Shown here: piece after piece, positions 7,852-59,908 of the stretch
Numbering within the stretch: position 1 is the first letter of the stretch
How the letters are laid out: each line of letters opens with the position of its first letter
Source of the DNA: Bugula neritina
Taxonomy: Eukaryota > Animalia > Bryozoa
Direction of reading: 5' to 3'
NCBI GenBank assembly: GCA_964035545.1
Contig: OZ037772.1
Location: forward strand, 1,240,001 to 1,304,000
Length of the DNA: 64,000 nt
Notes under the pieces: generated by a model
Database searches by the model: none
What the model was told of the DNA's origin: nothing
What the model saw: the letters and a program-made list of their open reading frames with translations, nothing else
Program-made: the position numbers and the translations under genes

Positions 7852-7863
7852 CTTGGATGCACT

Positions 7864-7881: not shown

Positions 7882-7882
7882 C

Positions 7883-22781: not shown

Positions 22782-23142
22782 ATGACAACTGCACAAGATG
22801 GTGCAGAGTTGTCCACCCAATGGTCCTACTCAAGGAAGAGTTCAACTATTATCTAATAGCCTCAGAAAAATCTGATAAAGAGGATAAAATAAAAATGGCC
22901 ATTCTAATGCGGACCATTAGACCGAGAGGTGTGGACATATTCAAAAGTTTCAAGTTTGGGGAAGGAGAATATAAAGATGTTTACAAGGATGTCCTATATA
23001 GGAAATTTTTGTAAAATGACCTCCAACAAAATAATCAAAAGACATCAACTGCTATCGACAAAACAGGAATGCTTATCAATAGATGAGTATGTCACCAACT
23101 TACATAGGATCGCCAGAAAATGTGACCTTGGTGACATGTATG
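22782..23142 (+). pseudogene. 5' half of a decayed Gypsy-type gag, interrupted by the giant insertion
   Basis: KEEFNYYLIASEKSDKEDKIKMAILM...SIDEYVTNLHRIARKCDLGDMY; continues in frame after the TSD at 59474-59481. Confidence 0.85.
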
Positions 23143-26100
23143 CAGGGTATAATTTCACAGTATCTCGTCCTCAGACATAACACTTATGTGCCAATACGAG
23201 ATACATTACATCATAATTAAATGTTGTCTATCGGCAAAAATTTTGCAGTAGCCAATCATAGTACTATATCAGGGCAGTCTGAGTGTAGTATCTCGTTTAT
23301 CAGCATAATTATAATAGCCCGTAGTTGAAGATGGAGTTGGAAGCTTTTCAAATACCTCCCGCATATAATAGCATTTATGCTAGGCCTTAAAACTAAATAA
23401 ACATTATGGTAGACCAATAATCATGAAAGCTCTACTCATTTGTAACTGGAGGATTTGCAGCACCACAATACTAAATTTCTTGCATTGGAGGTGCTTAGGT
23501 TGTGTTGTCATAGTTATATGTACTTATTGGGGCTTGGTATAAAATTAAACCTGACAATTATAACGATTAAAGTATTATTGCTGTGGTTTCAACTGACCAA
23601 CTTTGGAGTTATTATCTCAATTCTTTGTCGGGAATGGTTAGATAATTTCATGCAATAATGAGTTTTGGCTTTATATCATTATAAATAATGAGTTTTGGCT
23701 TTATATCATTATAAATATCTACATTGATGGCAGCACTGAGCTAGAATTCTAATATCTTTTCAAGCTCATTGGTTGGCAGCTTATCGGCTAAATTTTATGC
23801 AGATATTGAATAATGTGGTTTGATAGTTATGCTATATTGTTAGGTTCACAAGCATCTTTAAAAAGTTATAATTATTGCGTTGACCATAGGTCAAAAAATT
23901 ACCTAAAGAGAGGGCAGACAACTCCAAAAGATTGTTTTCGCAGAAGCAAGTAAAATTCAGCTAAACTGAATACTCCAACTGATCAACATTTTCATCTATT
24001 GAAATTGAAGAAAAGTTAAATATTATTATACTATTCTAATCATGAATAGGCACAAGCTAAAAAAATATTTATTTCAAAAAATATAAAAAGTAAAGTAACA
24101 CAACAATGTTTGCAAACGCAGACCTAAAAATGTGAATATTCTAGCTTGAAATTAAGTCTGAAATTCAGACTTTTCTAGGTTGAATTGACTTTAATTGACT
24201 CACCAGAAAAAAACAATTAATAAAATTATAAAGACAAGCATATAATGAAAAATGTAGTTCATTAGCAAAACTGGAGGAAAGCACTTTTTTTCTAGAAATT
24301 GTTCGATTACATAATACATTTTCGTGCAAATGATATTTTTTAATGAAATGAAACTGTTGTATTGTTTGGCTAGATGAAGTTTCAAAAGTATTTTTAATAT
24401 TTTCTCAAATAAAGTAGACATGCACTCCATTTTCACATTTTTTGGCAAAACATATGATTGGGATTCAGTAGTCAATCAGTTAAGCTTGACACAAGGAGTT
24501 GTCACATCCATCCCAAAGAACAAGACCATCTACAATAACAAACATGGAAAGTACCTAAAATTACATTTAAGTTTACAACAGTCCTTAAAATAAATGTTGC
24601 CTTCTACCAATGTTAAATAAGAACATGATGTAATGCTATGTTTACTTAGACTAAATCTTGCTGACTTACAATGAAATTCATTCATTTCAATTTGAAAATT
24701 CCTGTCAATAACTTGACTCTATGCTAACAACTGATTGTAATACCAAAATCACACTGCTACTTTTAGTTTAGGGAATTCGTTTCATTATTAGTTCAATATT
24801 CAGCAGAGGTTTTTCTTTAATGAACAAACAATAGGCATACATGCAGATGAAAGATTAGGTCTAGTGAATACTAACTTTGTGCCTAACAAAAGAAAATGAA
24901 AGACTGCATGAAAAATTAACAACTCTAAAAACTTGCAATTTGAATGAGGCTCAGGCTTTTAGGTGAGCAAGAGTAACCAGAAGAGCTACTTTAATGGAAG
25001 AAATTACTGACTGATTGTGTAGTTGCAGGCTGCATGATGTGTTTTGATTGTCACAACCACTTTTGAAAAGGGAAAATCCATTAAATTAAGACTACTGGCA
25101 AACAACAGAACGATAAGGAAAAAATACCAAGTAGAAATTCACTTCTCAAAGCAAACTGTAGTTATTACATTATAGATGCTTAGAAGAAGCAGGCAATAGT
25201 GAATGCTATATAGTGTAGATCAGGATTCTATACAATGACAAGTAAACTGAAATTCCAGTGCACTTTGAAACTACTTGTAAGAATGGGCTTAGTGCTTTAT
25301 AGTGCTTTGAAATTTTTTCAAGTCTAATTGGCACCATGCTATTAGAATTCGCAGAGAGATGACCCTTTAAACTTTCATTTTAAACTTTAATACCTTCACG
25401 ATTTTCAGTAAGAAATTCAATTTATCTAGGTCTGAAATTTCACCGAGTTGCATTGTAAAAGCCGCTGGTCAAAATGTTTAGTTTGTGATAACTTAATCAG
25501 CTGATTTTAGAATAACAATCATTGGGAATGACATCTTCATGTAGATATAGATATTTATGCTTATAATTATATCGACTGCCTTCATCAATCATCGATACTA
25601 TGCTGCCAAATCAACTAATTAATTACAGTTGGAAACTTCAATGGGCATTGAATAGCAATTTGGCAAGTTATACTTTTAATATTACAAAAAGAACTTATGC
25701 ATCAATATGATTTAAAACATAGGTGGGTACTCGGCAAGTGATTTTAACTGAAACTGGAACTTTTTTCATGCAGGAAAAGCATCAACGCAACTCAACAGAA
25801 ACTTAAAAATGTCCGGCACACTTTATGCTTTGGCAACATGCACACAATAACTTCGTTTATGGTACAAACCTTTTTGTTGATTGTTTTCCAACATTTTCAC
25901 TAGAGCAAAGCCGAAAGAAATTTGGAAACTGCATAATGATGCCAGCCACCGTGGCATCATCTTCTCTGGAAAAGTATTGACAAATCATCACCCAAAAACT
26001 TCAGCAAAGCCTCCATCAATAGTATGTAATACTTTAGCTGAAACTAAAAAGAAAGAGACAATATTTTCGTGTAATTTAACCCATTAATAAACGCATCAAT

Positions 26101-27091
26101 AGTTAGTGTGGCCACGGTTTAAACCTCATTAATTTCATGCTATTTAAGGCTTTCACAACTTAAAAGATGTAATTCATCTGCAAGAGAAATGTTAGGTATA
26201 TGAAATGAGTAGAAGTGCAAAAGCAAGCAGGTATTAAGGAAGGACGAGTTAGTAGGTGTACTTTGACTTGCGATAGATCAATGTGATACCAGATGTGAAT
26301 TTTGAGGTGTGTTTACTCCAATCTCACTGAAAAGGTATAAATAGCTAAATTTACGAGACACACAATATTTTATGAAATACTGCACATTCATTAAAACTTT
26401 ATAAAACTCTAGTGTGAAGGGTGACTCACACTTTTAAACCGTAGATGAGCTAAGTTGTAAAAGTTTGATGAGAACCTTTTACTCTATAAATTTATGCAAT
26501 ATAAAATACTCTCCACATATTCAACAGCTACGAAGTTTTGTTGAAGATAAACTTCCTCAACAAATATACAGAAAAAAGCTATTTGAAAGCTAAATTTCAT
26601 TAGCATATTATAAGATTATTTGTGTTTCATCTTTATAAACAGTGATTTAGTCATTTAACGGATAACTAATGATTTCACTTTGTTTTTCATTCAATAAAAA
26701 CTAAGTGTAGTTGGTATTAAAAACAGCTTTCATTTCTCACTTTTTTTCTCACCCTAATCTGTGTAGGCAAACAATTGGTTTGTTTCAAACACCACAACAG
26801 TAAAGCGTGACAGCATAGCCAGTGGAGAAAACAATCATCTATACTGCTGGATTAGTGGCAACTTGTGAGTGTGTCAGAGTAGTGTCTTGTTGTGTGACTC
26901 TACAAATAAATTATGAATTTGAATATACTACAAAGTTGCAAACATTGTTTTAACAAAACACAGCATTTATTTGATATTATATGTAAAGCTCAAGTTGATA
27001 TAATATATATTAAATAAATTTTAGCTTTTCTTTTGGATACTCTAAAACAAAATAAAAAAATAAACCAAAATTGGGTAAAGCCATGCGAACT

Positions 27092-27376
27092 AGAGAGAGA
27101 AAGAGAGTGGGAGAGGGGGGGTGGGAGAGAAAGGTTAGGAGAGAGGATGGAAGAGAGATGGGGTAGAAGAGAGAAAGGGAGAGAGTCAGAGAGATAGTGG
27201 AAAAGGGAAGAGAGAAAGGTTAGGAGAGAGAGAAGGTGGGAGAGACGGAGAGTGGGAGAGAGACGGAGAAGGTGGGAGAGACAGAGGGTGGGAGAGAGGG
27301 AGGGTGGGAGAGAGGGAGAGAAAGAGAGAGAGGTTGAGTGGAAGGTGTGGGAAAAAGAGACAGAGAGAGGAGTGAA
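27092..27376. repeat. GA-rich low-complexity polypurine tract
   Basis: Degenerate (GA)n and gtgggagaga units. Confidence 0.9.
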
Positions 27377-27989
27377 AGAGCTTCCAAACTAACACCATTG
27401 ACTTAAAAAATGTTGATAAAAACTGCAGCAAGTCTTTAAAAACGATGCTAGCAAGTTCAAAGCTCACTATAACTTTCAAAATCAATAACATGTCAAGTTC
27501 AAAAAACTTATCTGCGAGCAAAAAATAGTTACAGAGACAACCAGGTATTGGGCAAGAGCCAGCTAATAGGAGTACCTTTTTAGGTAAACTGCATGCAGGC
27601 ACAGTGAGATAGCATCGGTGAGTTGTGTCTTCATTTTAATTTCCTAAAAATGAACATAAACAAATGCTAGTAATGAAAGTTTTCAGGGTTATTAAGGGTG
27701 CAATTTTATCACTAAACATCATAGCAATAGCAAAAATTGCTCAGTACAAATTTAAGAAAAATTTCTTTCATCCATTACATAATACCCGAAATCAAATCCA
27801 TTTATTCAATTCATCAAGCTGAAAAACCAAGAATAATCAGAAAGACAGTAAAATCACTTTCTAGTAAAAAACAGCTTTAGATCATAATTGTTGGGTTCAG
27901 CTCTTAAGCTAAGACACCGATGCACTGAAATACGAAAAAGATCAGCATACTTTTGACTGTCACAAAATTTAATTTACATTTTAAGGTCA

Positions 27990-28032
27990 CCCGCCACCCG
28001 CGCAGGACCACGTTGGTGAAAGGTGACCAGAT
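27990..28032. mobile_element. 43-bp GC-rich insert flanked by a 12-bp direct repeat (retroposed fragment?)
   Basis: ATTTTAAGGTCA at 27978-27989 and 28033-28044. Confidence 0.55.
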
Positions 28033-29697
28033 ATTTTAAGGTCAATCAAAATCAAGCAAAGTTCATCGTCATATTGCTTACTGCTTAATGGTGCAGCTTA
28101 TTTTTGCTTACCAAGTTTCTTTCTGCAGAATAATTGTAGCTAGCTTCTCGATTTGCCATCTTTATTCCAGTCCAGGTTCAAATGACATCTTGATCGTTGC
28201 AAATATCCATGCAAGCTAAAAAATATTTATCAATCAGTACAACAACAGAAATACTTACAATGATCCAAATATTACTATTACATTACTATAACATTACACA
28301 GTAACACTATGTTTATAATTGTAATACGGAAGCATGACTTTGTGGTAGTTTGATATGCTATAGCAAAAGGTAGAAAAATCAACTGAAAAACCGACAGAAA
28401 TAATCAAGTACAATTAACTAAAGTAAATAAACTTACTGAATAGTAAATATTTTACTATACTTAGTGAATTGATTTACTTCCACTAGGTTTACTTTCATGA
28501 TTAAATGCTTCTGTCTATTTTCCAGTTTATAGGAATATATTAAAAGTGAAACCAATTATAATTACTATTACCTTATCTAGTTTTGACTATATGTTTTTCA
28601 CAAATATAAACATAGTTATATGCGTATTCCTATTGTGACTGCAGATACCATTGCGGTAACTGAAATCAAACTTCATTCTACTTCAAGTTTCAAACATTGT
28701 CCTAGTTCAAAGACTAACAAGTGAATAATTAATAACTGTGAAAGCTCCAATAAGTTACTTCATTATTAAATAAGATACAACTGATTCTACTGTATATGAT
28801 ACTATGGTATCTGTATTAAATTAAAACATGATTATGAAAATCAAAAGTTGTATTTTGGGCACTTATATTATAGTAATTAAATTAACAGCTTAAAATAGGC
28901 ACATTAAACCATGATTGGAATTTTTATCCATTTATCTTTATAATTATATTTATTCTTTATTCTGAAAGTTGACCCAACACTGGTAACAAAACTAAAAGTA
29001 ATTGATTAAGTATGATTTATTCTTACACACTTTACCATTATATTTAGTCTTCCTAACTTTCAGTCTGTCATAGTGATTACTACTATATGAAAATGACTTT
29101 GACTTAGAAGTCATAATTATAGTCACAGCGTTGATAAGTCAACAGTGTAGGATTAACACAGCACTAGACTAGTACTACCTCCAGCTTTCAAGTTTATGTT
29201 AGGGTATCTCTAAGACTAAAGAGTAACCCTAATAATGTAAGCAAAGAGCAGTGAGTAATAAGCATGCTATTCAACTTCAAGTTTTACTAGTACTATAACC
29301 AATACTACATGTATTTTAATAAAATTATGTAGCTGGTGAGTGAACTATAAAATTAAATAAGGATCAAACTTTGAGCAATATTAATAGAAATAATATTAGG
29401 ACAGAGGTTTCCAATTATTAGTATGTGAAACCAAAGGGGAATGGATAACTACTATTAGTATTATTACATTTACTTTATATTTAGTTTTACCAGTTCGTAT
29501 TATGATTATCTTACTTTGAATTGTAAAGTATAATAATTATGATATTCATAGTAGTATATTTATATTAGTAATTAATATGTATAATAGTAAAAACATTTGT
29601 TTTAAGTTGCTTGTTTATTAAATAATTCTAAATCCTAATAACGATAATCTTAATATTAGTGATAATCATTATGCTCATCACTGTCCCCAAGTGCTAT

Positions 29698-30002
29698 TGT
29701 TATAATTTTCAGATTAGGGTTGATATGCTATCCAGAGAGTCTATTTATCTAGTATAGAACTGCACCAGGCTAAGTCGAGTGAACGAGTATATTTTATACA
29801 CAACTATACATCATAAAAACACGATACATTATTTCTAACAAGTTACACATCTAATCTATTTCACACTCTAGCTTCGACTGAGTTAGCAGCGGGAAACTAC
29901 AATTGCTGCTAACTATCAACTACGCTAATTGGCTATCCATTGTTCCGGGTCAATTACGCGACCCTACATGTTGTGCTGCTGGTAGTTCCACGAACCACCA
30001 CA
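29698..30002 (-). repeat. 3' LTR of copy 2 (AATAAA changed to TATAAA)
   Basis: 305 bp; ttttatacac here versus ttttattcac in copy 1. Confidence 0.96.
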
Positions 30003-30282
30003 CCGCCCCCACCAGCAGAAAGCCATCTTTCTGATATATATATAAAAAAAACATTCAATAGTAATTGCATACATCAGTGGACAAAAATAATACATAATAT
30101 ACAGGAAGAGACATAATAATAGACAGAGTCGTTATAACGATCCGTTGCATACAATTGGCCAGCTGTAGATAGACGAGGAATACTAGCTAGCTGTGGTATT
30201 AGACAAGGAATAACCTGTCTAGCAGTTAAGCATTTGCACGATTTTGGTTCCTCACCAAATGTGGAGTATTCTGGGTAGCATA

Positions 30283-31359
30283 CTAGAGTCCTTGTTGGGC
30301 ACGCCGGTGCTTGGCTTGGCATGTACGCAATTTCCGTTTCATACGGCATACGGATCCCTTCAGCTGGAAGAGTCCTGTGGTAGTGTTAAGTAGATCTGGC
30401 GCCAGCTGGGTGAACTCTTCTTGTAATCGTAGGAGGCGTTCTTCTACTGTAGCTAGTCGTACTGGGTCTGGGGACGGTGTCCGTCTGCGGCGTAAGGGTG
30501 GACTGGGGGACCTGGTCCGTCTCTTCGCCGGGGTAGGGGAGATCTCTCCTTCTTCTGGATATGTAGTTTCCTCGGGGGTGTATGTAATTGGAGGGCGGTC
30601 AGACACCAGCGGGGATTGTTGGCGGGCGTTGTCTAACACACGTTGGAACCCCGAGGATAGAACGGCTAGTAGCATGGCCTTCTTTACCAGAGGTCATATA
30701 TACGTGAGGAACTCCGGGTACAGCTTAGCGTCGACCACATAGTTTTCTCCAGGGAAACAGCCCGCCGCTCTGTGTCTGGTGACGGGGTAGGGATACACAT
30801 CATTGTACCCGCAGGGGCAGAAGGTCAGTAGGAGATGAGCATTGACGTGTAGTTTAAGGGAGCGGTGAGAGGCGCAATCTTCACCACAGATCTGGCATCT
30901 CGTCCGTCCTCTGGACCCCCAGGCTGTTTCTATTTCTTCTTCGGTTTGTGGAGACACCCACCGCCAACGGCGGCGTAGTGGCTCAGGCCGGTCACCACTA
31001 GCATAGTCCTCCGGATACGGAGCGGGAAGTGTTCTATCCCGTACCCTGGTTGTAGCGGGTCGAGTGTAATCTGAAAAAGTTTCAACAGTGTTAGTACAGT
31101 ACACTGCTGTGTTGTCAGCTTGAACAGCTTGGCAACTCCTAATTCAGTTACCTCGTAGAGATTAATGATAGTGAATAGTCAGATAGAACCGTATTGCAAT
31201 GAGATTATAAAAATCTCTAAGTCAAACTGAGTTCTTACTAGGGTATTTCACTAACCTATCTCCAGCTCGATTGACTCAGTGAGTCAGAGCTGAGCGATGC
31301 AATCTAGTTTCGTATTAAGATATAGTTAACTCACCCCACGATCTGTTGTCGTAAGACAT
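30283..31359 (-). pseudogene. ORF3 of copy 2, predicted join(31359-31335, 31070-30283), with a CGA>TGA nonsense change at 30696-30694
   Basis: Same splice signals as copy 1; the premature stop falls just after the zinc fingers. Confidence 0.8.
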
Positions 31360-31383
31360 ACTGAATATGTGAAATGGTTTGAA

Positions 31384-34300
31384 CTACTGCTTAGAAACAC
31401 GTCTACTCTTGACTGCATCAGCGTATGAAAAGATCGAGCAACGTGGTTGGGGTGCGTGATTAAGACTTTGTGCACCCGGCGGATGAATTTTGTTTCTATT
31501 TCCGCCGATACAAAAGTTGATATTTCCGTGGTGTTGACAACTCCCACATTTGCTCGATTCTTTTCTCGTACGGTTTTCCCCTAGACTTTCATGTGTGCCG
31601 CTTTTAACGCAGTCACATACGAAGTCTTTCAAGTATGCGGGGGGTTGCCTCGTACGCTGTCCCCTTTCTAGGGGGGGTGACACGCTTGCCGGTTCGTTAG
31701 TAGGGGCCTCTAATGGCGTCTCTACTTCACCGTCCCCGGTCACCTCTTCTTGTTCTCCGGATGGAGCCCCTCCCTCCGTGGGGGTTTGCACTTCCGGAAC
31801 CGGCTCGGTTTCTGGAAGTGATGGAATTAGACTTGGCGGTGGCGGACACGCTTCTGTTGACAAAAGCTGCCGCTCCTCTCTCACCAAGTTTTCTTCCCGC
31901 GGTATGACCACTTCGTATTCAGGTCCATGCCGCCGTCGCCCGCGCGTTGTTGTCTGCCTCCTGGGCTCTAACAACGGGGGGGCTTCTCCCACTCCGCCGG
32001 GGCTAGCCCAATACGGTTTCAAGCGAGACTCATTCTGGATAGACACCTGTCCTGAGCGCTCAATCTTGTACGTATGATTGGGCATAGCCTCGACGACCAC
32101 GTAGGGGCCTACGAACTTAGGCTTCAGCTTATCAGCCTGTCCGCGGCGCCTACGGTAATTGACCATCCACACCTTATCTCCTCTTTGATAGAGGGGTGGT
32201 TCATCGGAATCTTCGTGCCGCACCTTCCACTGCTGTTGACGCAGTATCTCGTGTGCGGCCTTCATCCGTTCCACTAGTTCACTGGCATACTCATGGACTG
32301 AGTTATCCTGCTCTGGAACGTGATAGGTGAGATGGTCAGGGACACGAGTCTCCCTCCCGAGCATCAAGAGGTTTGGGGTCTCACCAGTACTGGTGTGTGG
32401 GGTGCTACGGTATGCACGCATGACTTGCGGCAACACCGTATCCCATTCCTCTTGACCTCGTCCAAGGAGGAGACTCCGGAGTGCATCACCTAGCATCCGG
32501 TTGTTGCGCTCCACCACCCCGTTACCTTGAGGGTGGTAGGGGGTGGTCCTGCTCTGATTTACTCCCCAGAGGTGGCAAAGGTCGCTCATCAGTTGAGACT
32601 GGAATTGAGCGCTTTGATCAGAGTGTATCTGTTCGGGGAGCCCAAAATAACAGAATACATGTTGGTCTAGTGCCCTGGCCACTGTTGGGGCTGATGCATC
32701 TGGGATAGCCAGAGCATCCGCCCACCTAGTAAAGTGGTCGGTTAGTACTAGGATCCAATTATTGCCTCTGGGGGTCAGGGGCATGGGTCCGACCAGGTCT
32801 ACAGCGACTACTTGCCAGGGCCTGCCAGCATATAGCCTCCGCCGTCCTGTTTCACCAGGGGGGCGGCTATGCTTACTGGCCTGGCAAATCTCACACTGTT
32901 TGACTCTGAGCCGGACGTCACGCTCCATCTGCGGCCAATACCACCTGAGTCGTAATTTGGACATCACTCGCTTGACCCCTGCGTGGGCCTGCTTGTGAGT
33001 ATCCCAAATCAACTCACGGCGGATGGCTGTGGGGCAGACTACCCTCTTCCTTTCCGGGTGTCTGCCGCTGGCAGCTAGAGAGATGGTTAGTAACCCATCC
33101 TGCCCGATCCGCAGCGAGTCCCAACGCTGACAGTATAGCCGGAACTCGGCGCATCCCTGTCTTATGCGTTCCTCGCTGGGTCGTCGCCCTTCCCGTTTGG
33201 CCCGGTATATGTCTGCCACGACTCCAGGCAGCTCTTCTTGGAGCTTCTTCAGCTCTCGAACATTACCGGCCAGTACAGGGTTGGCGCGGAGGTTTTGCAC
33301 ATCCTCCGGGGCTGGTCAACTCTTTGCCTGAGTTGACCTTGATCCCAGTCAAACGGTGCTCCGTGAGGAGCCAGCGTCTCCAACTCGCATCGTGGGGGAC
33401 CTCCGTCCCTCCTCTCGATGTTGAGACACTGTTTGCAACCTCCGTCAGGTCGGCGACTCAACCCATCCGCATTGCTGTGTCTCTTGCCCGGTCGATGTTC
33501 GATCCGGTATGAGAATTCAGCTAGGATTTCGAGCCACCGGGCGACCTGACTAGAGGGCTCTGCTCTCCTGCACAACCAGATCAGCGAGGCATGATCCGTA
33601 CGCAGCCGGAACTTCCTGCCATATAGGTATGGTCTGAAGTGCTTCACTGACTTGATTACTGCCAGCAGTTCCTTGCGGGTAGTGCAGTAATTTCGTTCAG
33701 CGGGAGAGAGAGACTTGCTGTAGTAGGCTACTACTACTTCTCGGCCTTCCTGCACTTGTGACAGCACAGCGCCAACATTCTGGTCACTGGCGTCCGTGTC
33801 TAGGATGTACTCCAGAGTGGGGTCTGGGTAGGCCAAAATGGGCGCCGTTAGGAGGCAGCCCTTGAGGCGGTCGAACGCTTCTTGTTCGATTGGGGTCCAC
33901 TGCCACGTCACTCCCTTTGCGGTAAGCCGGTTTAACGGCTGGGCTATGCCCGCAAAGTCTGGTATGTATTGCCTGTAATACCCTACCAGCCCCAAGAAAG
34001 CCCGGAGTCCGGTCAAGTCTTGGGGGTTGACCCAGTCTTCTACTGCCCGTACCTTTTCGGGATCCGTTGCCACGCCGTTTCGACCGACAACGTGCCCCAG
34101 GTACTTGACCTTCGGCTGCAACAGAGCGCACTTGGAAGGTTTGAGCTTAAGACCGGCACCTCGGAGTCTCTCGAAAACCTCCTGCAGACGACTGACATGT
34201 GTCTCGAAGTCTGGAGAGATTACGATGACATCATCGAGGTAGACCAGCAGTGTCTTCCAATGGAGTCCGCTAAGGACTTGTTCCATCAGCCTCTGGAAGG

Positions 34301-36853: not shown

Positions 36854-36884
36854 CTTGGATGCACTATCCCACTGCTGCCACCAC

Positions 36885-37169
36885 TGTTATAATTTTCAGA
36901 TTAGGGTTGATATGCTATCCAGAGAGTCTATTTATCTAGTATAGAACTGCACCAGGCTAAGTCGAGTGAACTATACATCATAAAAACACGATACATTATT
37001 TCTAACAAGTTACACATCTAATCTATTTCACACTCTAGCTTCGACTGAGTTAGCAGCGGGAAACTACAATTGCTGCTAACTATCAACTACGCTAATTGGC
37101 TATCCATTGTTCCGGGTCAATTACGCGACCCTACATGTTGTGCTGCTGGTAGTTCCACGAACCACCACA
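36885..37169 (-). repeat. 5' LTR of copy 2, 285 bp (20-bp deletion)
   Basis: Lacks gagtatattttattcacaac; the deletion lies between AAC microhomologies. Confidence 0.96.
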
Positions 37170-38269: not shown

Positions 38270-38660
38270 CGACGCATCAGCCTTCTCCTAAAAATATTGT
38301 CTAAGGAAGAACTACATCCAACTCTGAGTGCTGCCTATGATGATTTTCTAGATCAGCGGACCACAAGCACTGTACAGACTCGGTCTCAGGTTGCAGGATT
38401 TCCCAGATCAGTAAGAGCAAACAAGAATGGGTATCTTTATAGTTTTCTCCCAAGAACAATAAGAGATATGAGGATCAGCACTGATCACACACAGACAGGC
38501 TAGTTAGCCTGTTAAGTTAATCTGCACAAGAATGTTAACACTTTTTAGATTACTGTCCAAATACTGACAACTTAGTTTTTTATATGAGGCACACCCCTTC
38601 TTCCCTCTAGGGAGGTCCAGTGTGGAAATAACATCGACAGGTATCGACAGGTATCGACAG
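38270..38660 (+). mobile_element. 5'-truncated CR1/L2-group LINE (end of ORF2, 3' UTR, tandem tail)
   Basis: Absent from the paralogue near 8928. TSD GAGTC (38265-38269 and 38661-38665). YLYSFLPRTIRDM resembles the SFFPRTIRDWN ORF2 C-terminus. Tail of three ATCGACAGG(T) units. Confidence 0.8.
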
Positions 38661-48500: not shown

Positions 48501-49458
48501 AAGGCAAAACTCAGAGTCAGACCCAAATACTAATACAGTAATACTAATAAGTAATAAGTAATAGTAATACTAATACTAATAGTAATAGTAATAGTGAATT
48601 TATAATTATTAATTACTTATACTTATAGTTATACTATTAGTATTAATAATAATGAGTTACATTTGGTTTTACTACCAAATACCAGTATCAGTAAATCATG
48701 AATAATAGTCATTATGATTATCATTATGAGTAACCGTACCTCAAACTGTGAGTCATAGTGAAAGTCATTTAAATAGTTACTAGTAGTAGTATAGAATAGA
48801 ATAGACTAAGACATACTGATACTCCTACTCCTAGTCACTAGGCTAGTGATAGTATAAATATTATTAAATTGATAACTACAAATAATCCTGGCAACAATTC
48901 TAAGTTAGTAGCGTAAATGATTGTTTTGAGTATAATTACCTGTATTGTTGTGGTTTTCAAGCTTGAACGCTAAAAATAAAGATTAAGTTCAGCATTTATC
49001 ACCAAAGGGCAAAACAGCTCAGTAACTTAAAAGCTAACTTTGGATGGAACACGGTGAAAAACTAAAACTAGCCTTCGATTTTAAATATGATGCTTCTGAC
49101 AGTACGAAGAAAGAGGTGTAAGCTAAATTCATTTGATAAAAAATAAATTTGCAAGATCTCATGCTATTAAAGTGACTAAAATTGTCTTCTTTCTTTAATC
49201 GATAACTTCGCAATTTTTTCATCATTTAAAAAATTGAAAGCCTTAGTTACCAACTTTAAACGCAATTTTAGAGCTGAATGAATCATCAAATGCTTACGAA
49301 AGTATGATTTTTGAAATCCTTAGATTCTTTTGCATTAGAAAAGTCTAAAATCTAAAAATTGGAAATTAATTTCAAATTTAAGTATTTCCAAATTAAACCT
49401 TCATTTACTACACTTAATAAACGCCGCCACATCCCCGGTTTTGTCGCGACTGGTCACA
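45503..49458. mobile_element. DNA-transposon-like element with TGTGACC termini at a TA site; superfamily unassigned
   Basis: Left TGTGACCTGGCACCACAAAACAAGGGATGT versus reverse-complemented right TGTGACCAGTCGCGACAAAACCGGGGATGT; flanked by TA on both sides. Confidence 0.7.
47064..47752. mobile_element. Non-autonomous piggyBac element (689 bp)
   Basis: TTAA at 47060-47063 and 47753-47756. TIRs CCCTTACGCGATCAA and CCCTTTGGCGATCAA. Subterminal repeat gatcaatggaccatatatg occurs twice. Confidence 0.88.
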
Positions 49459-52400
49459 TATGTTTCTCTGTTTACTCTCTAACAGTTTTATTTCCGTTCA
49501 TTTTTTAGAGTTTACTAAAATGACATGGGTGTGCTTTGTTGTGGCTCCTAATTGAGCGCATCCGTTGAGATTATTGGAAGTTTTGTTGAAACTGAGCTGA
49601 GGCCTCTTACTCCTAAAGGCAAGAATTTGAGTCATCTTAGCTACTTGTAGCATATCAACATCGAACAGCACCATTCCACTACTCTAAGCTTAAGGTTTTG
49701 GCTGCATTAGATCAACAGGTAAGTTTAATAGTTTGTATTTCGTACACTATTTCATGATGTCTGTTCAGCATTTACTTAGTAGCACACATTTATAGATTTT
49801 GCATTCTTTTAGTTTTTTGCAGTACAACTTTTCCACGCAACTATTACACTGTTGTTGCTGTTAATTGTGGTTTATTCTGCTTGACCATGCAATTATTGAA
49901 TTATGTTGCAAAGGTGATTGAGTCCTTTTATTTAATTTAGTACACACTGGAAATCTGCAGTTTTTAGCCATTTTTACAATTTAGCTGCTAATGAACAATG
50001 CTTTTTGCTTAAAATTAGTGAGACATCAAGAAATACACCTAAATAATCAAGGTTCTTCTTAATTTTGCATGATTTCTCATGTTTTTTCCTATTTATTCAT
50101 TTCATTTGGATTGCCTACTGTTACAAACTAACCGTGGCGATCCCCAGTCAGAAGTTGCTGTAATTAGAAAAAAGCATAGGAAATCAAAGAAAATTAAAAA
50201 GAGCCTTGATTATTTAGGTGTATTTATTGATATTTTTTTAGTTTCGGGCCAAAACTCATGTTCATTAGCAAAAACTTGAGATCTTCAGTATGTACTAACT
50301 TAAATAAAATGAACCAATTGCAGTAAATTTCTGCATTTTCTAATACTTCTCAAATGTACACCTAAAATAGTGTTGTCTTAAGAAAATGACACTAGCTGCT
50401 GTTTTCATGTATGTGCCCCAATTGTATATAATGCTGTTGATTTGTTTAGTTCTTTTTCTATTTGTTTGTTATATAACTTTTCTTTTATGGTTGTTGCCAG
50501 CACCTAAAGCATTATTCATTAGTGTCAATTAATTTCTACTCACAGTTTTACTGTTACATAGTTTATAAAGCCCTTGTGTCAACTTTTCTAGATATCCTGG
50601 TTAAAATTGTTCCACTTGATGAATGTCATAGGGCATATGCAATAGCAAAACAGTTGCAGGCTGTTTTGGAAAAAAAATTGTGCATATAATCTTTATTTTA
50701 TACATGTTATTTAGGCTTTGGTAGAACTGTTGGAGAGCCTTTCTCTTGAATAAAGCTACTCAACTTCCCGGATTCTACTTTATTGACATTAACCCACTAC
50801 CTACAACACGCCTTGAAATTTAGCTAATAAATTATGTATTTTGTGAGTTTTTTTAAATGTACAATGTTATGTATAAATTACAATCAGTTTATATATATAT
50901 ACATGTCTTTTGCTACTTAGTATTACAGTGTAAAAAGCATTTCAGGGTTAACAATTTAATTAATTGGCCCTAACAGTAATTATGTATAATACAGATTTGC
51001 AGATGCTTTAAATGAACCCAAAAAGCTGATGTTGTTAAACAGTGTACAAAATAGTCACCTCATATCAGCCAGACATGCTTAGTCATTACCTAGCATTAAA
51101 ATCATATTATGAATGCAGTCAAGTTTTGATATGCATCCCTATTATTGATAGTTTGTGAACCAGCAATTAAATATCAAGAAGCAATATTACTAACCAATGT
51201 GCTGGTTAAAGAGTTTCAAGTTGTAGTTATAGTATCAAACTATTATAATGGCATAAAAACTATCAGTTAAAACATCTTATTAATATTTACTACAGGAATA
51301 CATATTATAGGTGTGCTAAAAATCTGGTAGAAGCATCAATTATTTTAGATGTTTTGGATTTAGTATCTCTGTACTATAATGTAATATACAGAACATCAGG
51401 TGCTGTCTCCACAGTGCATTGATGGCACTAATGAATATTAATACATGCAGGCAGTGTTGGTAATGATTTATTGAAATAGGAGTTTAAAAACTGTTTAAAC
51501 AACAACGAAAAGCCTGAGATTAGTCCAAGGAGAGGGGTATTTCAAGCTAGCAGATGAGCAATATAGATGCGAAAGTCTTGCCTAAAAATCATTATTGTTA
51601 TATCTAGTCATTAATTTCTTGCAATAGATCTATTTCACTATTGAGAAGAACAAAATTAGCTAGTAAACAGTGTAATAGAGTCAAGGCACTTTGGCAGTGC
51701 TAGTTTAAAATAAACCTGGGATAGTCGAATAGCAGAAGTACTTTTTGATGCATAATATAATTATGTACAGCTTAAGATTTTGCAATACTGTGTTTTCAGT
51801 GAGAATTAATTTCAATAGCTACATTAAAATAATGTATGCAGTGATGCAAGTGATGCAAAATCTTCTAAGATGCTATGACTGTAGCAGTTTGCTACTATAG
51901 TCTCAAGTAACAAACCAAATAGCCTTTCTTTGTGCCACCATCCAAATGCCAAACAAATAACTCATTCACTCTGTAACAACAAGGTGGTCTCCCAAGTAGA
52001 TTGTTAGACATTTCAGGCATTAATAACCAAAGGCTTTTCACTTTGGCATAATTGTATAGTTACCCAGCTAAATAAATAATGTATTCATGGTATTGTAATT
52101 CCAAGCCATGCATTTATCTGTGAATGCAGCTAAGTATTTAATACGGCCTTACATTTATGTACTATGTAGCAATGCCTAATGTAGCTGTCAAGCTTCTACT
52201 TATACTCATTTTACTGATGCTTTACTTCTGATTACATGATTACAAACATAGCAGTTCAAACAAAATTATTTTAGATAGGAATAAATATAATGCTCCTAGC
52301 AAATGTTGTAAAACTATTTTCCAAAAACATATACTTTGCAAACAAACTTTTCAGAAAGTTATAATGCATTTATCATATTATTGTTTCATTTAAAAGTTAT

Positions 52401-54862
52401 AATGATAGAATATTATACTTAAAACACACCCAAATCTTTAGATTTTTGTAATACTGTTAAACAAGAGTTAACAGTAAGATTGGCTGTAGAGTAGAATGTT
52501 TAGCTCTTTGTACTGAAGCTAACAAGTAACTGGCATTAAAAAGAGATGTAGATAAAAAGTGACAGAATAACAACTGGCTTGTATATTGGTAGTGCAAAAA
52601 GCTGTATATAACAGTTTAAACAAATACCCATTAGAATAAATGGTAACCCAGTACTTAAAATGTGGTATGTCATAATACATATTTGTGGTGTATTAACTAG
52701 GCTAGATCAACACATAGCACTATATAATTGCTTTAGTATTTACAATTAGTTTGTGGTCTGGTGGGATTTGTTGATAGCCATTGTCTTTATTAACATAACA
52801 GTTTCATAAAATTAGCAGTTTTCCTTATTCACCTAGTTAATTTTTAAGATTTATGTACAATATTTACATATTAGGATATAAAAAATATCTTCAACCAGTG
52901 AATATCAAAATAATGATTAAAGACATATTTTATGTCATATTCTTGTGGCAATCTAAATAATAAGCTGGTCTAAATTGTACTTGTGCAAACAGAACCAGCT
53001 CATGAATATATGTTGTCTTTTTTTAACTTGACAGTTAATCTAATATGGATGTGTATTTTATACTTGCTTTTGTGTTTAAGGTGATAAAATTGCACTGGTA
53101 AGGTAAATAAACATTGCTTGTTTGGCATGCTTTTGCGTGGCATTGCATATTATGCTAAACTAATGGCCAGTTTTGCAGTAGCTTCACCATAACCTTCAAA
53201 AGAATGCAAATATCATCTAATTATTGTAAGCTTTTTAAGTTAACTTGACTAGCTATAAACACATGTAAAACTATTAGGCTATTCCAATTTCACGATATAC
53301 ATAGCTCTATAATTCTGAAAAACTGCTAGGTAGAGTGGAAATTAAACATGATCTATTCATTGCTAAAGTATTACAGCTATGAATAATATATATGTGATTA
53401 CCTGAGTGATATCACAATCTTCACTTGCTAAGTTAGTTTAAATACAGGAAAAAAATTAATCTGGGGAAAGATTATATATGAGAAGCTGTTTTTGTAATAA
53501 TTCCCGGCTCTAGGGTGGTTTAGAAGAATTGTTTTAAAGCAAAACTTTTGCATACATGAGTTGAATAAAATCATTGAGAGTTTTATGAAGGTCTATTTGT
53601 GTATAGGTAGCCCTATGTCACAACTCAAGTTTTTAGATTTTATGTAATTTGTGGTGCAAAGTTGCAAATAAAAACCTTATTTTAATAATACTTAGACATA
53701 TGCAAGCAATAAAGATAATGAAAAAAATGCTATAGTTGCTAATTAGCTAATATTACTTGCATATGATGCAAATATTTGTATGCATGCATGTTTAGTTTAT
53801 TAGCATTGGTTAGATATAATTGAACATATAGATTTGATGTGGAAATTGAAGAAAATCAATATGTTGTGTTCTATATACAACAACAGTTTTTACATTGGTT
53901 TGTTAATTACTTCATAAATCATTTATTACTTCATGCAATATTTGTTCCTGCAACTTTGCAGAGTGGCAAAATGCATTTCAAAGACATATATTAAGTGATT
54001 TTAATTATACTAGAATTTTCAAACTAAGAATTTTTGGGGAGTTTTCTTCTTCCTAAGACATATGTGGCAATTGAACACATGATAAGTGGTGGGCCACAAC
54101 TCCTTTATACAACCTTGCAAGAAATTATGCAGCCATTTAAATAGAAAAGGAATTATTGAATTTATTTATTCAACATTATTAGTATTTTATAAATATTTGT
54201 TGCATTTAATTAATGAGCATAAAATTTGTCTTACAAATACTGTAATTAACAGCATGGTAAAAATATATTATATATACTGGAATATATTTTGTATTGTATT
54301 AGATTTAGGCTACATTTCTAATTAAAATGAGTTAATGGCTAAGTTTAAATATCTTCGACTTATAGATTACATTTTTATGTGCTATAAAAATTTAACTCGT
54401 TTGTTACGACATTTCTCCATGCATAAAAGCAAAACCTACGGCAAGAAATCCTTACCTAGAAAGATAAATAATAATTTACTTTAATTACATCAAAAGCTAA
54501 TATCAGCAAGCATTCTATAAATAATGGTAATTTACCTAGTGTAATTTTTCTTAAACTAGCTAAGCTTGCTTGGTACTTTAATAAGTTTATTGGCATGGTG
54601 TATTATGTTATACTTATATATTTTTAAGGCTTTAAGGAAAATGATGTTTTAGCTGTGTTATTCCTAATGCAAGCCTTATAAATTTACAATATATTATACT
54701 AAAATATTATGTTTGTAATAAGAAAGAAAACAAATTACTTTCATAAACTTATAATTATTGCATTCTGTTATTGTTAATGCTAGAATAACAAATTGAACAC
54801 GGCATATGCTTCCCTAACCAGATGCTTTTAAACGGATTAAAAATAATTTGTCAATTTCTAAT

Positions 54863-55880
54863 AGACCATGTAAAACTCAGCCAATCAGCGAAGTGTACCA
54901 GGTCAATGTCTTACCATTGTAACTGATATAAAATTCTGCAAGTTCAATTGCAAAATGCATGCTTCTAAAAGCTAGTTGTGCAACTTTTTTTTCATGCATT
55001 ATTTAATTTCATATCTTAAATTGATGACTCTTGAAATGATTTTTTAAAATGTCTAAATTAAGTGTTTATAAAACGCAATTAAAAATTGCATGTCTAGAAA
55101 AATGACCTGGTACACTTTTGCAACTTAAAGCCAATTATTACATAACTGCCAGCTTAGTAGTTATTTGTTGTTGCAGCTTGAATGGGTTATTGTTTAGCAT
55201 TGGAAGCTTGCAGTAAACATCTGTGAATTTGGTACATGACTTTGATTGGCTGGTTTTTGAATGGCCCTTTAGTATATGCATCTGGATGGCTGGGTAGTGT
55301 GGACTCCGCCTACATCTAGCTAATGTACAGTAGCCAATCCACAGTAGTATTACAAAATTTCTGTTTAACAAATGAAATATTCTGGTCATTTGTTTTGTAC
55401 TTTACAATCGTAAATATTCTATTCAACTAGAATTTTATTGTATGTAAGCCATGGGAACTACTAAGAGGTTAAATCAACCACCCATGCTGGTAATATTGTT
55501 GCTCGCAGTAATAGCAAGTCCACACCATATAAATATACACATAAGCTATTATGTGCAGCTTATGAATGCTGAAGTGACCCCATTTCTTACTTTCAATTTG
55601 AAAAAATTGATAGTAGTCAGTTTCTGCAGCAGTCAACTGCATCCACAATAAACAACGTAAGCTTTCAAATAAACTATAAATATATGAAATATTAGTGTGG
55701 AAACAATGTAATTTATTCATTGCTATGATGAAAAATTACAAGAATATTATATAAAAGCTAGATATAGATTTCTATAAAATGGCACAGGTAAAAATAACAC
55801 ATTTTTACTTCAAATTCTAAATTTCATCAGTCACCAATGGTGGCTGTAGATTACAGAGAGCACAGCAAACTATCATAATC
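54863..55880. repeat. Left arm of ~1-kb inverted repeat (partner 57885-58959)
   Basis: Near-identical reverse complement of the right arm; this arm has a 57-bp deletion near 55609. Confidence 0.95.
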
Positions 55881-57884
55881 TTGTCTAATAGAGGTGCCAA
55901 CACCAAGTTCACACCTCCAGGACCATTTAAAATATTGAACTCCTTTATTCTTTTGATTGCTCTTTCGACATGGATTCGAAGGTTAGCAATCAACTTTGTT
56001 TGCAGTAACTGCATTTTAGTCATTTGCAAATGGCCTCTTTTCCCAGGTGGTATGGCCAACTTGGCTCCAGCACCTATAAGTTCTTCTTCAATAAGAAAGC
56101 CTCTATCTGCCATGACCACATCATCTGGGTTTATGAAGTCTAAGAACCCAGAGTCATTCACTACACACTTGTCTGAGGCTTTACCTCCCATTCCATGTGA
56201 AATAAAGCAGATAGTGCCCCTGGGTGTAATTGCAACCAAATACTTGATGGTGTTGATATTTTTATACTTACTCCATGTTAAATATTGAGCCAGCTTTGAT
56301 TGAGGCTTGCAAATGAATATTTCTGTGCAGTCTATAATGCACCTAATGTTAGCATATTGGCTTTGAAAGCTCAGAGGGATGTTCAGCTTCTCTCTTGTTG
56401 GAAAAACTATTAGATTGTTCAGTTCTCTTGCTAAAATATCTAATGTGTTTTTGAAGGTTTTGCTTGCTAGCAATCTAGAGATATAAAAAAGGCCAGCAAG
56501 TATTTGAAACTGTAAACCTTGACGCAGTTTCATCAAAGCCAATAAAAGTTTATCTTGTCTTGTTAACTTTTTTCTGAGAGTGAGAACTTTCATCTTCAGA
56601 CATATAAATCTAAATATAGTAAATAAAGAATGAAAATTAAATTATGATTCAAATTATAATGTATGTGCTAAATAAATTTTGTGCTCAGTTTGTATTCATT
56701 CAGCAGTTTTTACCCTCTGGTAAGTAGCTTCAGTTATATTTTGCAACAACTATGAAGTTCAAGAACTGCTAGCTGAAGGCTTGACCCAATATATCACCAT
56801 TCAAACAGAATGTAATGTGTCAACATGTGTTACGTAATGCTGTAACAGTACATAATAAGCTAGTTGTATGAATACATGCTTTGAATGAAGTCATGAGTTT
56901 AAACAAATAGTGTTGACAAACAATTATTACTTCATTTTATAATTATACTATAACTAATTCAAACCCATATTATTTTTAGAATAGCATTTAATAATGTTTG
57001 TGAATAAGTGAAACTAGTAACAAGTGTAAACCATTTTAGTTTTAAACACTGAGTTAGTTTCAGCTAAAAATTAGATTAGAAGGCCACTTTTGATAAGCTT
57101 TAAAATAACCAAGGAAAATTTAAGTCAAAACAATTTACTTTTCCTGGAGAAAGTGAGTCAATTTATCCACAAATAAAAGACTGCTGCTTGTTTAAATAAA
57201 ACCCTAAACTAAATAAGTCAAAGCATACAGATGACCACTGTGGTATTTATGAATATCTTACATAAAACAACATCTTTAATAAAAAATGTATGAATGATGC
57301 ACTCACACTGCAACAAATTTAATTAAAATGACAGTTTTACTACACATCAAATTTAATCAATGTAGAAATTTTAGCATAGTGAGACTTGCATTGTTTATTT
57401 GTAATAAACCATAGTCTATCTTTGCAACAAGAAAATCATAATTTTCACCTTGCTAAAAAATAGTATAGAGAACGTGTAGGTATTCCAGTATAGAATTTAG
57501 TTTGCTTATCTGTAGTGGTGAAAGTTTTAAAAACTTTTACTTTTTCAATAGTTGCTTTTTGTTTAAACGTGGAACTTTTTGAGCCTTTTCTTCCAACTTT
57601 TGATTTTCGTCTATCAATAGAATGTGCAGATCTTTTTTTCTGAGTAGTTGATGATTCTGGTAACTCGGTTACTTCTGATAAAGTCTGACTATGAGGCTGG
57701 CTGTCAGATGAGTTCTGTTGCTCTATATCAGCTGACTCTGTTGAAGACGTTTTCTGTTCGCTTCCTTCACATGTTTCATTAAAACCACTGTTTTTTGTGC
57801 GTCTTACATTATATGCTTTAGTGTGTTGGTAGCCCAAATGAAAGGTTGGAGTTGGATTTTGCTCAGTGGGCTGACCATCCTTAT
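55817..57884 (-). pseudogene. ISL2EU transposase, 5'-truncated: join(57884-57449, 56609-55817)
   Basis: THAP-end-like motif DGQPTEQNPTPTFHLGY; phase-2 GT-AG intron at 57448-56610; IIDCTE, YKNINTIKYL, MADRGF and RIHVERAI motifs. Confidence 0.88.
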
Positions 57885-58959
57885 GATTATGATAGTCTGC
57901 TGTGCTCTCTGTAATCTACAGCCACCATTGGTGACTGATGAAATTTAGAATTTGAAGTAAAAATGTGTTATTTTTACCTGAGCCATTTTATAGAAATCTA
58001 TATCTAGCTTTTATATAATATTCTTGTAATTTTTCATCATAGCAATGAATAAATTACATTGTTTCCACACTAATATTTCATATATTTATAGTTTATTTGA
58101 AAGCTTACGTTGTTTATTGTGGATGCAGTTGACTGCTGCAGAAACTGACTACTATTTTCGAAATTTAAAAGGAAAACAAATTCTTGGTGCAGCAGTGGCA
58201 GAATATGTAATACAATTTTTTCAAATTGAAAGTAAGAAATGGGGTCACTTCAGCATTCATAAGCTGCACATAATAGCTTATGTGTATATTTATATGGTGT
58301 GGACTTGCTATTACTGCGAGCAACAATATTACCAGCATGGGTGGTTGATTTAACCTCTTAGTAGTTCCCATGGCTTACATACAATAAAATTCTAGTTGAA
58401 TAGAATATTTACGATTGTAAAGTACAAAACAAATGACCAGAATATTTCATTTGTTAAACAGAAATTTTGTAATACTACTGTGGATTGGCTACTGTACATT
58501 AGCTAGATGTAGGCGGAGTCCACACTACCCAGCCATCCAGATGCATATACTAAAGGGCCATTCAAAAACCAGCCAATCAAAGTCATGTACCAAATTCACA
58601 GATGTTTACTGCAAGCTTCCAATGCTAAACAATAACCCATTCAAGCTGCAACAACAAATAACTACTAAGCTGGCAGTTATGTAATAATTGGCTTTAAGTT
58701 GCAAAAGTGTACCAGGTCATTTTTCTAGACATGCAATTTTTAATTGCGTTTTATAAACACTTAATTTAGACATTTTAAAAAATCATTTCAAGAGTCATCA
58801 ATTTAAGATATGAAATTAAATAATGCATGAAAAAAAAGTTGCACAACTAGCTTTTAGAAGCATGCATTTTGCAATTGAACTTGCAGAATTTTATATCAGT
58901 TACAATGGTAAGACATTGACCTGGTACACTTCGCTGATTGGCTGAGTTTTACATGGTCT
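57885..58959. repeat. Right arm of the inverted repeat (copy of the last transposase codons and the 3' end)
   Basis: Starts gattatgatagt and encodes IMIVCCALCNLQPPLVTDEI* on the plus strand. Confidence 0.95.
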
Positions 58960-59473
58960 ATTATGAGGAACAAACTCCTCGATAGTTTCTACATTTGCGC
59001 ATGATTTTATCAAGATAGGCTTGCTTTTGTGTCAACCTGTAGCCAGTGCAACTATACTTTATGTAACGAGTAAAACAGACTCATTTCAAAGTACACAGTC
59101 TAAAGGGTAGGAATTACTACAAAGAAAAGTGCCGGTTAAAAGTTAATTATAATTGGAAATAAGGTGAAATATCAGTCAGAAATTAAAAAGTGTCAACTAA
59201 AAAGGTGTATTGTTATTTCTTTTTGGCCTAATGAAAATGTTTTTTGAGGAAGAAGTACGAGAAACATCTAGGAGGGGTTCATATCCACCACTGGCGACTA
59301 CCTGTTTATTGATGAAGAACTATCCAATGATAGTACAGTATTATGGTCTTTTGCCTTATAATTGGCTTTGATTTTTTTATGTCTAATTACGAGATACTAA
59401 ACAGATGCAAAGTATGTTGTGCATAGGCAGTTTTTTTATGTCTCTAAACAACATTCTAGGAAAATATATACTG

Positions 59474-59908
59474 CATGTATGATGCTTTTTTTATGCAGGC
59501 CTTTCTTCTTGGCATCAACGACACGAACAACTTTGGAGAAAATTGTTCGAGGAGTCAGAAAACATAGACCTCAAAAAAGCTATTAAAAAGTGCGAAGTGG
59601 CTGAGGGCTCTCAGAGTGATATGAAGACTATTAAATCGGAAGGAGAATCAATTCATACACTTGGTCTCAAGGCCACTAAAGCAAACAAAAGTGCCAAACT
59701 GTACTTACGCACAACTGACAAGGAAGCGAATAATCCTGCCAAGTCTAACTGTGAAAACTGTGGCAACTCTCATCCTCCCGAAAATGCATACGGCAAACAG
59801 TGTAGTAACTGCACGAAATCCAACCACTTCATAGCAGTCTGCAGACCCAGGAAAAACGGCGGGATAAATGCAGTCACTGAACACATAGCTAAAACATTAA
59901 AACTTTAA
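59474..59908 (+). pseudogene. 3' half of the interrupted Gypsy gag, with two zinc knuckles
   Basis: LLGIND...LKKAIKKCEVAE...CENCGNSH...CSNCTKSNHFIAVC. Confidence 0.88.

Follow-up and report, generated by a model that had tools for sequence, protein, structure and literature searches.

The interrupted gag-like repeat and its insert

The stretch of Bugula neritina DNA analysed here, called the window, comprises 64,000 nucleotides (C8:1240001-1304000 in our numbering, contig OZ037772.1) of an assembly of 216.00 Mb with 9 chromosomal pseudomolecules (PMC11480708); window coordinates count from its first nucleotide. Within it, a gag-like open reading frame (ORF) is split by a 36,331-bp copy of a giant DNA transposon family, which occupies positions 23143..59473 on the + strand. 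The upstream half of the ORF lies at 22745..23142 (+) and ends in the octamer CATGTATG (23135-23142); the same octamer recurs at 59474-59481, directly before the downstream half (59482..59905, +). We observed by direct reading that these two target-site duplications bound an insert that starts with CAGGGTATAATTTC (CAGGGT at 23143) and ends with GGAAAATATATACTG (ATATACTG) at 59473. When the insert is removed together with one octamer, the sequence ...KCDLGDMYDAFFMQAFLLGIND... (RKCDLGDMYDAFFMQAFLLGIND) is restored in a single frame, with a frameshift further downstream. The downstream piece contains a CCHC zinc knuckle (CX2CX4HX4C), and the closest ESM Atlas clusters are CCHC/gag-type proteins; a Pfam scan of the gag pieces returned no gag domain and no significant match. 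We therefore use the wording gag-like, with the zinc-knuckle motif and the ESM Atlas neighbours as the grounds for the identity.

The empty target site was sought genome-wide with a query of 140 nt that joins 70 nt of either flank. This query was found uninterrupted (positions 1-140, 90-99% identity) at a minimum of 21 other genomic places, and the window locus splits it into 1-70 and 63-140, the overlap at 63-70 being the 8-bp duplication. Since the flank query is contiguous elsewhere, both gag-like halves belong to one repeat family, and an empty target site exists at no fewer than 21 paralogous places. Both insert boundaries match exactly the ends common to ~80 other copies. The preliminary description, made from the letters of this stretch, had proposed that a gag gene was split by an insertion with an 8-bp duplication at both junctions, a proposal that halves from different families would have overturned; direct reading bears out the duplication, and the empty-site query shows a single family.

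Copies of the host gag-like repeat lie mostly on contig C8 and mostly on the + strand (e.g. C8:272074/274483, 465374/467783, 1092807/1095248 and 3886073/3888478). Many of them have a partial duplicate of the same 105 nt ~2.4 kb upstream. This arrangement would fit an internal duplication or a repeated unit of larger size, with most of the copies confined to a single chromosome.

The mobile unit is 20.47 kb long

We fetched three canonical copies of the family, of 20,468, 20,537 and 20,467 bp, which are colinear at ~98% identity. The window copy aligns to the canonical copy C8:1008054-1028521 in five colinear blocks of 97-99% identity, and because of this five-block alignment it is resolved into the 20.47-kb unit plus four later insertions. 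The 36 kb that had been taken for the mobile unit is thus too long: ~16 kb of it is later nesting, and the high-copy core had been missed. The window insert is an old, decorated copy of a young and abundant giant family.

A high-copy family with shared ends and distinct 8-bp duplications

Probes of 400 bp from each end gave at least 40 genomic matches apiece at 98-100% identity, with many left/right pairs ~20.4 kb apart. Patterns for the exact ends located 80 left and 84 right ends, compared to none for the reversed-pattern control. Bracket-matching joined these into 73 pairs and left 7 left and 11 right ends unpaired. The modal class of 20.2-20.8 kb holds 30 of the 73 pairs; another eight measure 11.0-20.0 kb, and the remainder exceed the modal class, the longest being a 52.4-kb copy that encloses a nested copy of 19.4 kb. 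Internal-deletion derivatives of 11-19.8 kb retain both ends, and in a 19.75-kb copy read at its left end (L005), a 643-bp internal deletion accounts for most of the shortfall. Together, the paired copies sum to 1.73 Mb, or ~0.8% of the 216-Mb genome.

Both flanks were compared for 15 pairs; each pair carries a perfect 8-bp duplication, and all of these are different. Flanks are unrelated from copy to copy, and the two boundary nucleotides are the same in all. The suggestion of a giant DNA transposon family is therefore upheld by ends that pair 72 more times elsewhere in the genome and by 14 further pairs with perfect, different duplications.

Over the terminal 1.85 kb, the median pairwise divergence between copies is 1.0% on the left and 1.7% on the right. 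A recent burst fits these copies, because most variable sites in the left-end alignment are singletons. Sub-lineages are visible from shared variants, such as a tandem duplication of 30 bp that five copies have in common or a C/T difference within the terminal inverted repeat (TIR). A few older ends with 1-3 mismatches are present in the genome, and older fragments of the family are suggested by the many read contigs that match at 90-95% identity.

The copies are strongly clustered, with one main region per chromosome: C1 32.9-35.3 Mb, C3 14.8-15.8 Mb, C5 14.6-17.7 Mb, C6 0.4-6.5 Mb, C7 11-15 Mb and C8 1-8.5 Mb. Twelve left ends fall inside ~1 Mb of C3, and matches to the hAT domain lie far from the family clusters. 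These clusters may mark pericentromeric or otherwise transposable element (TE)-rich chromatin. Copies of the family have also served as targets for other copies on no fewer than four occasions; in two of these (L014/L049 and L029/L052), both flanks were read and show an 8-bp duplication. Several sizes are recurrent: 25,120 and 25,124 bp, 28,256 and 28,270 bp, 32,360 and 32,376 bp, four copies at 22,422-22,515 bp (five if the class is widened to 22.26-22.52 kb), and a further class of two copies at 29.3-29.4 kb. The recurrent sizes by themselves suggest that copies with the same extra insertion have themselves transposed.

Ends and anatomy of the unit

The family ends are 5'-CAGGGC...CTG-3' (CAGGGCATAATTTC...AGACATAA). 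In the window copy, the left terminus and subterminal region (23143..23300, +) begin with CAGGGT, where 79 other copies have CAGGGC, and contain the 9-mer GTATCTCGT twice (23160 and 23288) and its complement ACGAGATAC once (23196). The right terminus (59380..59473, +), established by direct reading and the end census, ends in ...CATTCTAGGAAAATATATACTG and has a subterminal ACGAGATAC at 59389. The inverted match of the first 38 nt is 25/38 for the family and 26/38 in the window copy, whose sixth base is mutated from C to T; the imperfect, CAG-initiated TIRs noticed beforehand are thus real. This TIR is weak, but it is well above chance, with CAG at positions 1-3 and AGACATAA at 31-38.

The subterminal motifs are repeated in both orientations. 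Three occurrences of GTATCTCGT/ACGAGATAC lie in the left 160 bp, and one plus one variant in the right 220 bp; the hexamers TCTCGT/ACGAGA have five of the nine occurrences in the unit within the terminal 600 bp. The inverted pair GTATCTCGT-27 nt-ACGAGATAC is exact in 71 of the 80 left ends and has no genomic occurrence outside the left ends of the family.

The interior of the unit has a flat GC content of 25-38%, except for a GA-rich 16-bp tandem array (4.07-4.24 kb) and a segment at 10.1-12.95 kb. In the window, this segment lies at approximately 41040..43890 on the - strand and corresponds to the C-terminal region of the reverse transcriptase of a decayed non-LTR (long terminal repeat) retrotransposon; it is part of the family unit. 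The ORFs of this region are broken and gave no significant Pfam match, and a sequence search of the PDB was also empty. The reverse-transcriptase identity is assigned because homologues of a 121-aa ORF in the segment carry PF00078 (reverse transcriptase), and an ESM Atlas lead points the same way. We take the segment to be a dead non-LTR retrotransposon, carried along by the unit as a passenger.

A second repeat inside the unit is a foldback element of ~290 bp, resembling a miniature inverted-repeat transposable element, at 49986..50270 (canonical ~15.07-15.37 kb). In read contigs, it exceeds the neighbouring sequence 10-20-fold in word depth (peak at L062 5001-5400), and the flank of locus L025 has a diverged copy. 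The repeat thus looks like a small element in its own right, far more abundant than the unit around it.

No recognisable gene in the unit besides a dead reverse-transcriptase fragment

Outside the reverse-transcriptase-like segment, the 79 stop-to-stop ORFs of at least 40 aa gave no meaningful Pfam match, and Rfam and tRNA scans of the unit returned no matches. The flat, low GC profile shows no exon-like islands. Transcription was assessed over canonical 12-18 kb, where the sole true RNA run yielded three contigs of <200 nt with a depth of 2-4. No contig joint with GT..AG ends, i.e. no spliced contig, was found over the same interval. With three small RNA contigs, low-level transcription is neither supported nor excluded. 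Contigs from read runs of unrecorded kind behave like repeat DNA over this interval, with huge word depth, and runs labelled 'symbiont metagenome' contain parts of the giant element. In the flanks of 60 end loci, a scan for transposase-like ORFs found none.

In summary, we found no evidence of a recognisable protein or RNA gene in the 20.5-kb unit besides the dead reverse-transcriptase fragment. The element had been portrayed as cargo-bearing, with many exon-like remnants. That portrayal finds no support in the Pfam-negative ORFs, the empty Rfam and tRNA scans and the lack of spliced contigs in the 6 kb tested, and the cargo is better described as junk DNA.

Search for the transposase

To look for the enzyme, we made a six-frame hidden Markov model search of the whole genome, which gave 43 matches in total for the hAT, P, KDZ and Mutator-like element (MULE) domains. 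The hAT dimerisation domain PF05699 has 14 matches, three of them identical and with 563-aa frames (C1:30462367, C3:28905230 and C5:1593917). For the P/THAP9 transposase (PF12017), there are eight near-identical exon matches (e.g. C8:12694635). KDZ (PF18758) is represented by ten matches, four with 451-aa frames (C4:11721561, C4:11728328, C5:10985459 and C8:6196648), and MULE (PF10551) by 11, two with 779-aa frames (C3:24783783 and C4:22599985). The hAT RNase-H-like model PF14372 had no match anywhere; this search is uninformative, since the control genomes were also without a match.

None of the 43 matches lies inside any of the 73 paired copies, so the family is non-autonomous as to hAT, P, KDZ and MULE. 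The preliminary description was correct in seeing no recognisable transposase. The matches nearest to the family are a hAT match 261 kb and a P match 86 kb from a paired end, and a KDZ match 18.5 kb outside a copy. Away from the family, the exact 12-nt left terminus has 17-18 occurrences, compared to 6 in the control, and an end-neutral pattern gave 11 further genomic matches (positions not listed). One diverged left-like end (C4:12453645, 3 mismatches) has a weak MULE match of the same orientation 11.5 kb to its inside (C4:12465130, E = 4e-4). This coincidence is about what chance would give, because 43 matches were tested against 0.8% of the genome, and the match could be a nested insertion.

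Which superfamily moves the family

The identity of the enzyme is the weakest step of the explanation. We rank a hAT-like enzyme first, at less than an even chance, and consider a KDZ enzyme possible, a P enzyme or an unrecognised or self-encoded one improbable, and a MULE enzyme a slimmer prospect again. Of the superfamilies weighed here, three alone typically make a duplication of 8 bp, two of them being hAT and P; for MULEs and a few rarer superfamilies, 8 bp lies only at the edge of the range. The third is KDZ/Zisupton (PMC12730594, PMC11343200).

The CAGGG left end, the short imperfect TIR, the repeated subterminal motifs in both orientations and the 8-bp duplication all fit a hAT-like enzyme, which we favour tentatively as the mover of the family. 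CAGGG is also the left end of Ac. The family shares its 8-bp duplication, CAG-type left end, short imperfect TIR and bidirectional subterminal motifs, as well as derivatives with internal deletions, frequent insertion close by and mobilisation in trans, with non-autonomous hAT elements of the Ds type and with the large hAT-family element ToxhAT. ToxhAT measures 14 kb and occurs in fungal wheat pathogens (PMC12506042). Unlike these elements, the giant unit measures 20.5 kb, has ~73 copies and is negative for PF05699 and PF14372 (the latter uninformative). Both its 20.5-kb size and the lack of a PF05699 match in any copy count against hAT, and the searches by end pattern found no hAT element with matching ends. 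The termini also disagree in part. hAT ends are defined as 5'-YARNG on both sides, which the left CAGGG fits, but the right end, read inwards as CAGTA, does not. Nor is there a bias towards nTnnnnAn, the target preference of the Ac/Hermes type. At the 45 sites scored, a small sample, position 2 of the duplication has 23 A and 10 T, position 7 has 18 A and 19 T, and the core is merely AT-rich.

It is possible, if less probable than movement by a hAT-like enzyme, that the family is a non-autonomous KDZ (Kyakuja-Dileera-Zisupton) element of the Zisupton/Dileera type, moved by a KDZ transposase of this genome. KDZ elements are unusually large, make 8-bp duplications, end in CA..TG and can have TIRs that are weak or missing (PMC12730594; PMC11343200). 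The giant family resembles them in each of these points, and its 8-bp duplications together with CA..TG ends agree with what is described for Zisupton and Dileera of fungi (PMC12730594). The KDZ-domain genes with 451-aa open frames would offer a source of the enzyme. However, the family is non-coding, has neither a KDZ nor a CxC domain, and is twice the length of the described fungal elements, of which KDZ1/KDZx1 of Cryptococcus measure 6.4-10.9 kb (PMC11343200). There is no PF18758 match in the 73 copies, the nearest lying 18.5 kb outside, and neither a family-like end (up to 3 mismatches in 26) nor an exact 12-nt left terminus is present near any KDZ gene.

A non-autonomous P-superfamily element, moved by a THAP9-like P transposase of this genome, is an improbable alternative. 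The 8-bp duplications, the CA start and the existence of internally altered, non-autonomous copies moved in trans are shared with elements of the P/THAP9 type, and the eight near-identical exon matches suggest an active P family. GGGCA in the left end resembles what we take to be a THAP-type core and serves as a lead only. Against this, P elements measure a few kb and have TIRs that are usually well matched, compared to 25/38 here, and the right end of the giant family is without the GGGCA core. The copies contain no P-transposase remnant, there is no P match inside or near them, and the 12-nt terminus is absent near all P genes.

Alternatively, the family might be autonomous after all, with the unit or a larger variant encoding an unrecognised transposase that is spread over many short exons or has no Pfam model, possibly of a new superfamily with 8-bp duplications. 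In its favour, ~17 kb of the unit is anonymous DNA, size classes recur as if the variants themselves transpose, and no partner turned up elsewhere in the genome; the genome also holds large TE proteins without a Pfam match, e.g. a 1,462-aa frame related to a broken protein at 17511-19403 of the window. We nevertheless regard this as unlikely. ORFs of at least 40 aa outside the reverse-transcriptase-like region are without a Pfam match, the GC content is low and flat without exon-like islands, no spliced contigs cover canonical 12-18 kb, and copies of the 1,462-aa ORF are neither inside paired copies nor near the exact left terminus.

Descent from a MULE with weak TIRs is slightly less probable still. 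Duplications of 8-9 bp and the capture of foreign DNA are known from some MULEs, and the weak match at C4:12465130 inside a diverged left-like end would fit, but a single such coincidence is close to expectation and no family-like ends are found near the two intact 779-aa MULE genes. MULE ends are moreover usually long and start with G, and all 15 duplications of the giant family are exactly 8 bp. Two other classes of element were rejected: Mavericks/Polintons make 6-bp duplications and encode polymerase B and integrase, and Helitrons make no duplication and encode Rep/helicase, whereas the giant family makes 8-bp duplications and its unit showed no recognisable protein domain. Finally, the strong clustering in one region per chromosome could be read as segmental duplication or an assembly artefact instead of transposition, which is almost certainly wrong and is refuted by the same two end nucleotides everywhere, unrelated flanks, 15 of 15 distinct 8-bp duplications and the empty target.

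Probably a giant non-autonomous transposon moved in trans

Taken together, these data make it very probable that the family consists of ~20.5-kb giant non-autonomous TIR (class II, cut-and-paste) DNA transposons; this judgement covers the reading as a whole and not the choice of superfamily. Since the copies carry no transposase gene, an enzyme encoded elsewhere must move them.

Several observations weigh against this interpretation, in addition to the right end outside YARNG and the missing nTnnnnAn bias. Searches of the genome by ends or subterminal motifs found no autonomous partner. End patterns of 35 nt, relaxed to allow up to 3 mismatches, returned the family ends, a few older copies and one stray, random-looking match (C5:296541), and a pattern built to exclude the family returned nothing new genome-wide. 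The exact 12-nt left terminus was not found near any hAT, P, KDZ or MULE gene. Furthermore, ORF-by-ORF Pfam scans miss a transposase that is split into many short exons, and the RNA evidence covers 6 of 20 kb and consists of assembled contigs instead of raw reads. Three full copies were read, and the larger recurrent classes (22.4-22.5, 25.1, 28.3, 29.3-29.4 and 32.4 kb) are outside that set; a gene outside the reach of the four Pfam models might be present in one of these larger variants.

Transposition of the giant family could proceed as follows. A DDE transposase supplied from elsewhere would bind the CAG termini and the subterminal GTATCTCGT/ACGAGATAC motifs and excise the whole 20-kb segment, with a capacity of up to at least ~30 kb. 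The excised segment would then be re-inserted with 8-bp staggered cuts, often nearby or into other copies of the family, and copy number would grow by repair of the donor site or by transposition during replication. A more far-reaching proposal is that a transposase outside the hAT, P, KDZ and MULE models, either of a new superfamily with 8-bp duplications or a domesticated enzyme encoded by the host, moves non-coding segments of 20 to >30 kb, with an efficiency that has produced ~73 near-identical copies; we give this a low probability. It would include, with equally small likelihood, a preference of insertion for one TE-rich, possibly pericentromeric, region per chromosome.

Nested insertions and neighbouring copies in the window

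The four insertions nested in the window copy are all absent from the canonical copies. The largest is a GC-rich Ty3/Gypsy LTR retrotransposon of 7.5 kb at 29698..37169 (-), with TG...CA LTRs and a 4-bp duplication, CTAT. A twin copy at 694-8187, in which Pfam recognises RVT_1, RNase H, rve and protease, is 98% identical to it; both have 55-58% GC in a ~30%-GC genome, and both are nested within copies of the giant family. The upstream twin must be very young because its LTRs are 100% identical; those of the copy at 29698-37169 are ~93% alike, with a deletion. A SINE-like (short interspersed nuclear element) insertion of 392 bp lies at 38270..38661 and is absent from the upstream copy as well. 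The third insertion, at 45504..49457, is a non-autonomous TIR element of 3.95 kb with a ~33-bp TIR (GTGACC...) and a TA/ATAT duplication. The fourth is a Harbinger/ISL2EU-like transposon of 4.1 kb at 54859..58963 (-), with ~1.02-kb TIRs and a DDE_Tnp_4 ORF of 258 aa at 55817-56593. Its two TIRs are 99-100% identical, and the duplication at its junctions is not clean (TAA / TTA). Comparison of the window with itself shows that much of the 36-kb insert is repeated upstream as an inverted copy in which the 4.1-kb block and the large GC-rich block are both missing.

This upstream region comprises parts of two further copies. Positions 1..10906 (-) correspond to canonical 8796 down to 5734 of one copy, which carries the Gypsy twin. 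The right 3.1 kb of a third copy (10907..14011, -, canonical 20468 down to 17365) is inserted into it at canonical 5734, so that at junction 10906/10907 the right terminus of one giant copy abuts the interior of another, a self-insertion. At junction 14011/14012, the third copy ends at canonical 17365 against a 5'-truncated Gypsy-like fragment that begins in mid-integrase. Because the remainders of the inserted copy and of its host copy are both outside the window, a later deletion or rearrangement has to be assumed. On a larger scale, the 106 kb of C8:1193382-1299473 contain four copies: a reverse copy that encloses one full copy and the right end of a third, followed by the window copy.

Between the third copy and the gag-like repeat, three adjoining ORFs (164, 310 and 234 aa) at 17511-19403 (-) represent a broken large TE protein that is Pfam-negative. 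Assemblies of cnidarians and other animals contain >100 homologues, of which one carries DUF6589 (PF20231), and this genome has ~30 loci, three with intact 1,462-aa open frames (C3:19738434, C9:4657563 and C82:424882). The protein may be an unclassified transposase; as the transposase of the giant family it was rejected for the present, no locus being inside a paired copy or near a family end. Directly adjoining its start, on the opposite strand, is a short ORF at 19404-19640 (+) with a weak match to the Tesmin/TSO1-like CXC cysteine cluster (E = 0.0026).

Implications

In a limited literature search, we found no paper describing this element, and to our knowledge the mobile elements of bryozoans have hardly been described so far. 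On present evidence, the giant element is a new family of a known kind and not a new class. High-copy non-autonomous DNA transposons are normally short, whereas here a gene-less unit of 20.5 kb has made ~73 full-length copies that differ by 1-2% within a compact animal genome. This implies a very cargo-tolerant transposase acting in trans, and naming the enzyme would inform how large a segment cut-and-paste transposition can move and might provide a tool for the transfer of genes as large cargo. In bryozoans, the family is a strong marker of TE-rich chromosome regions.

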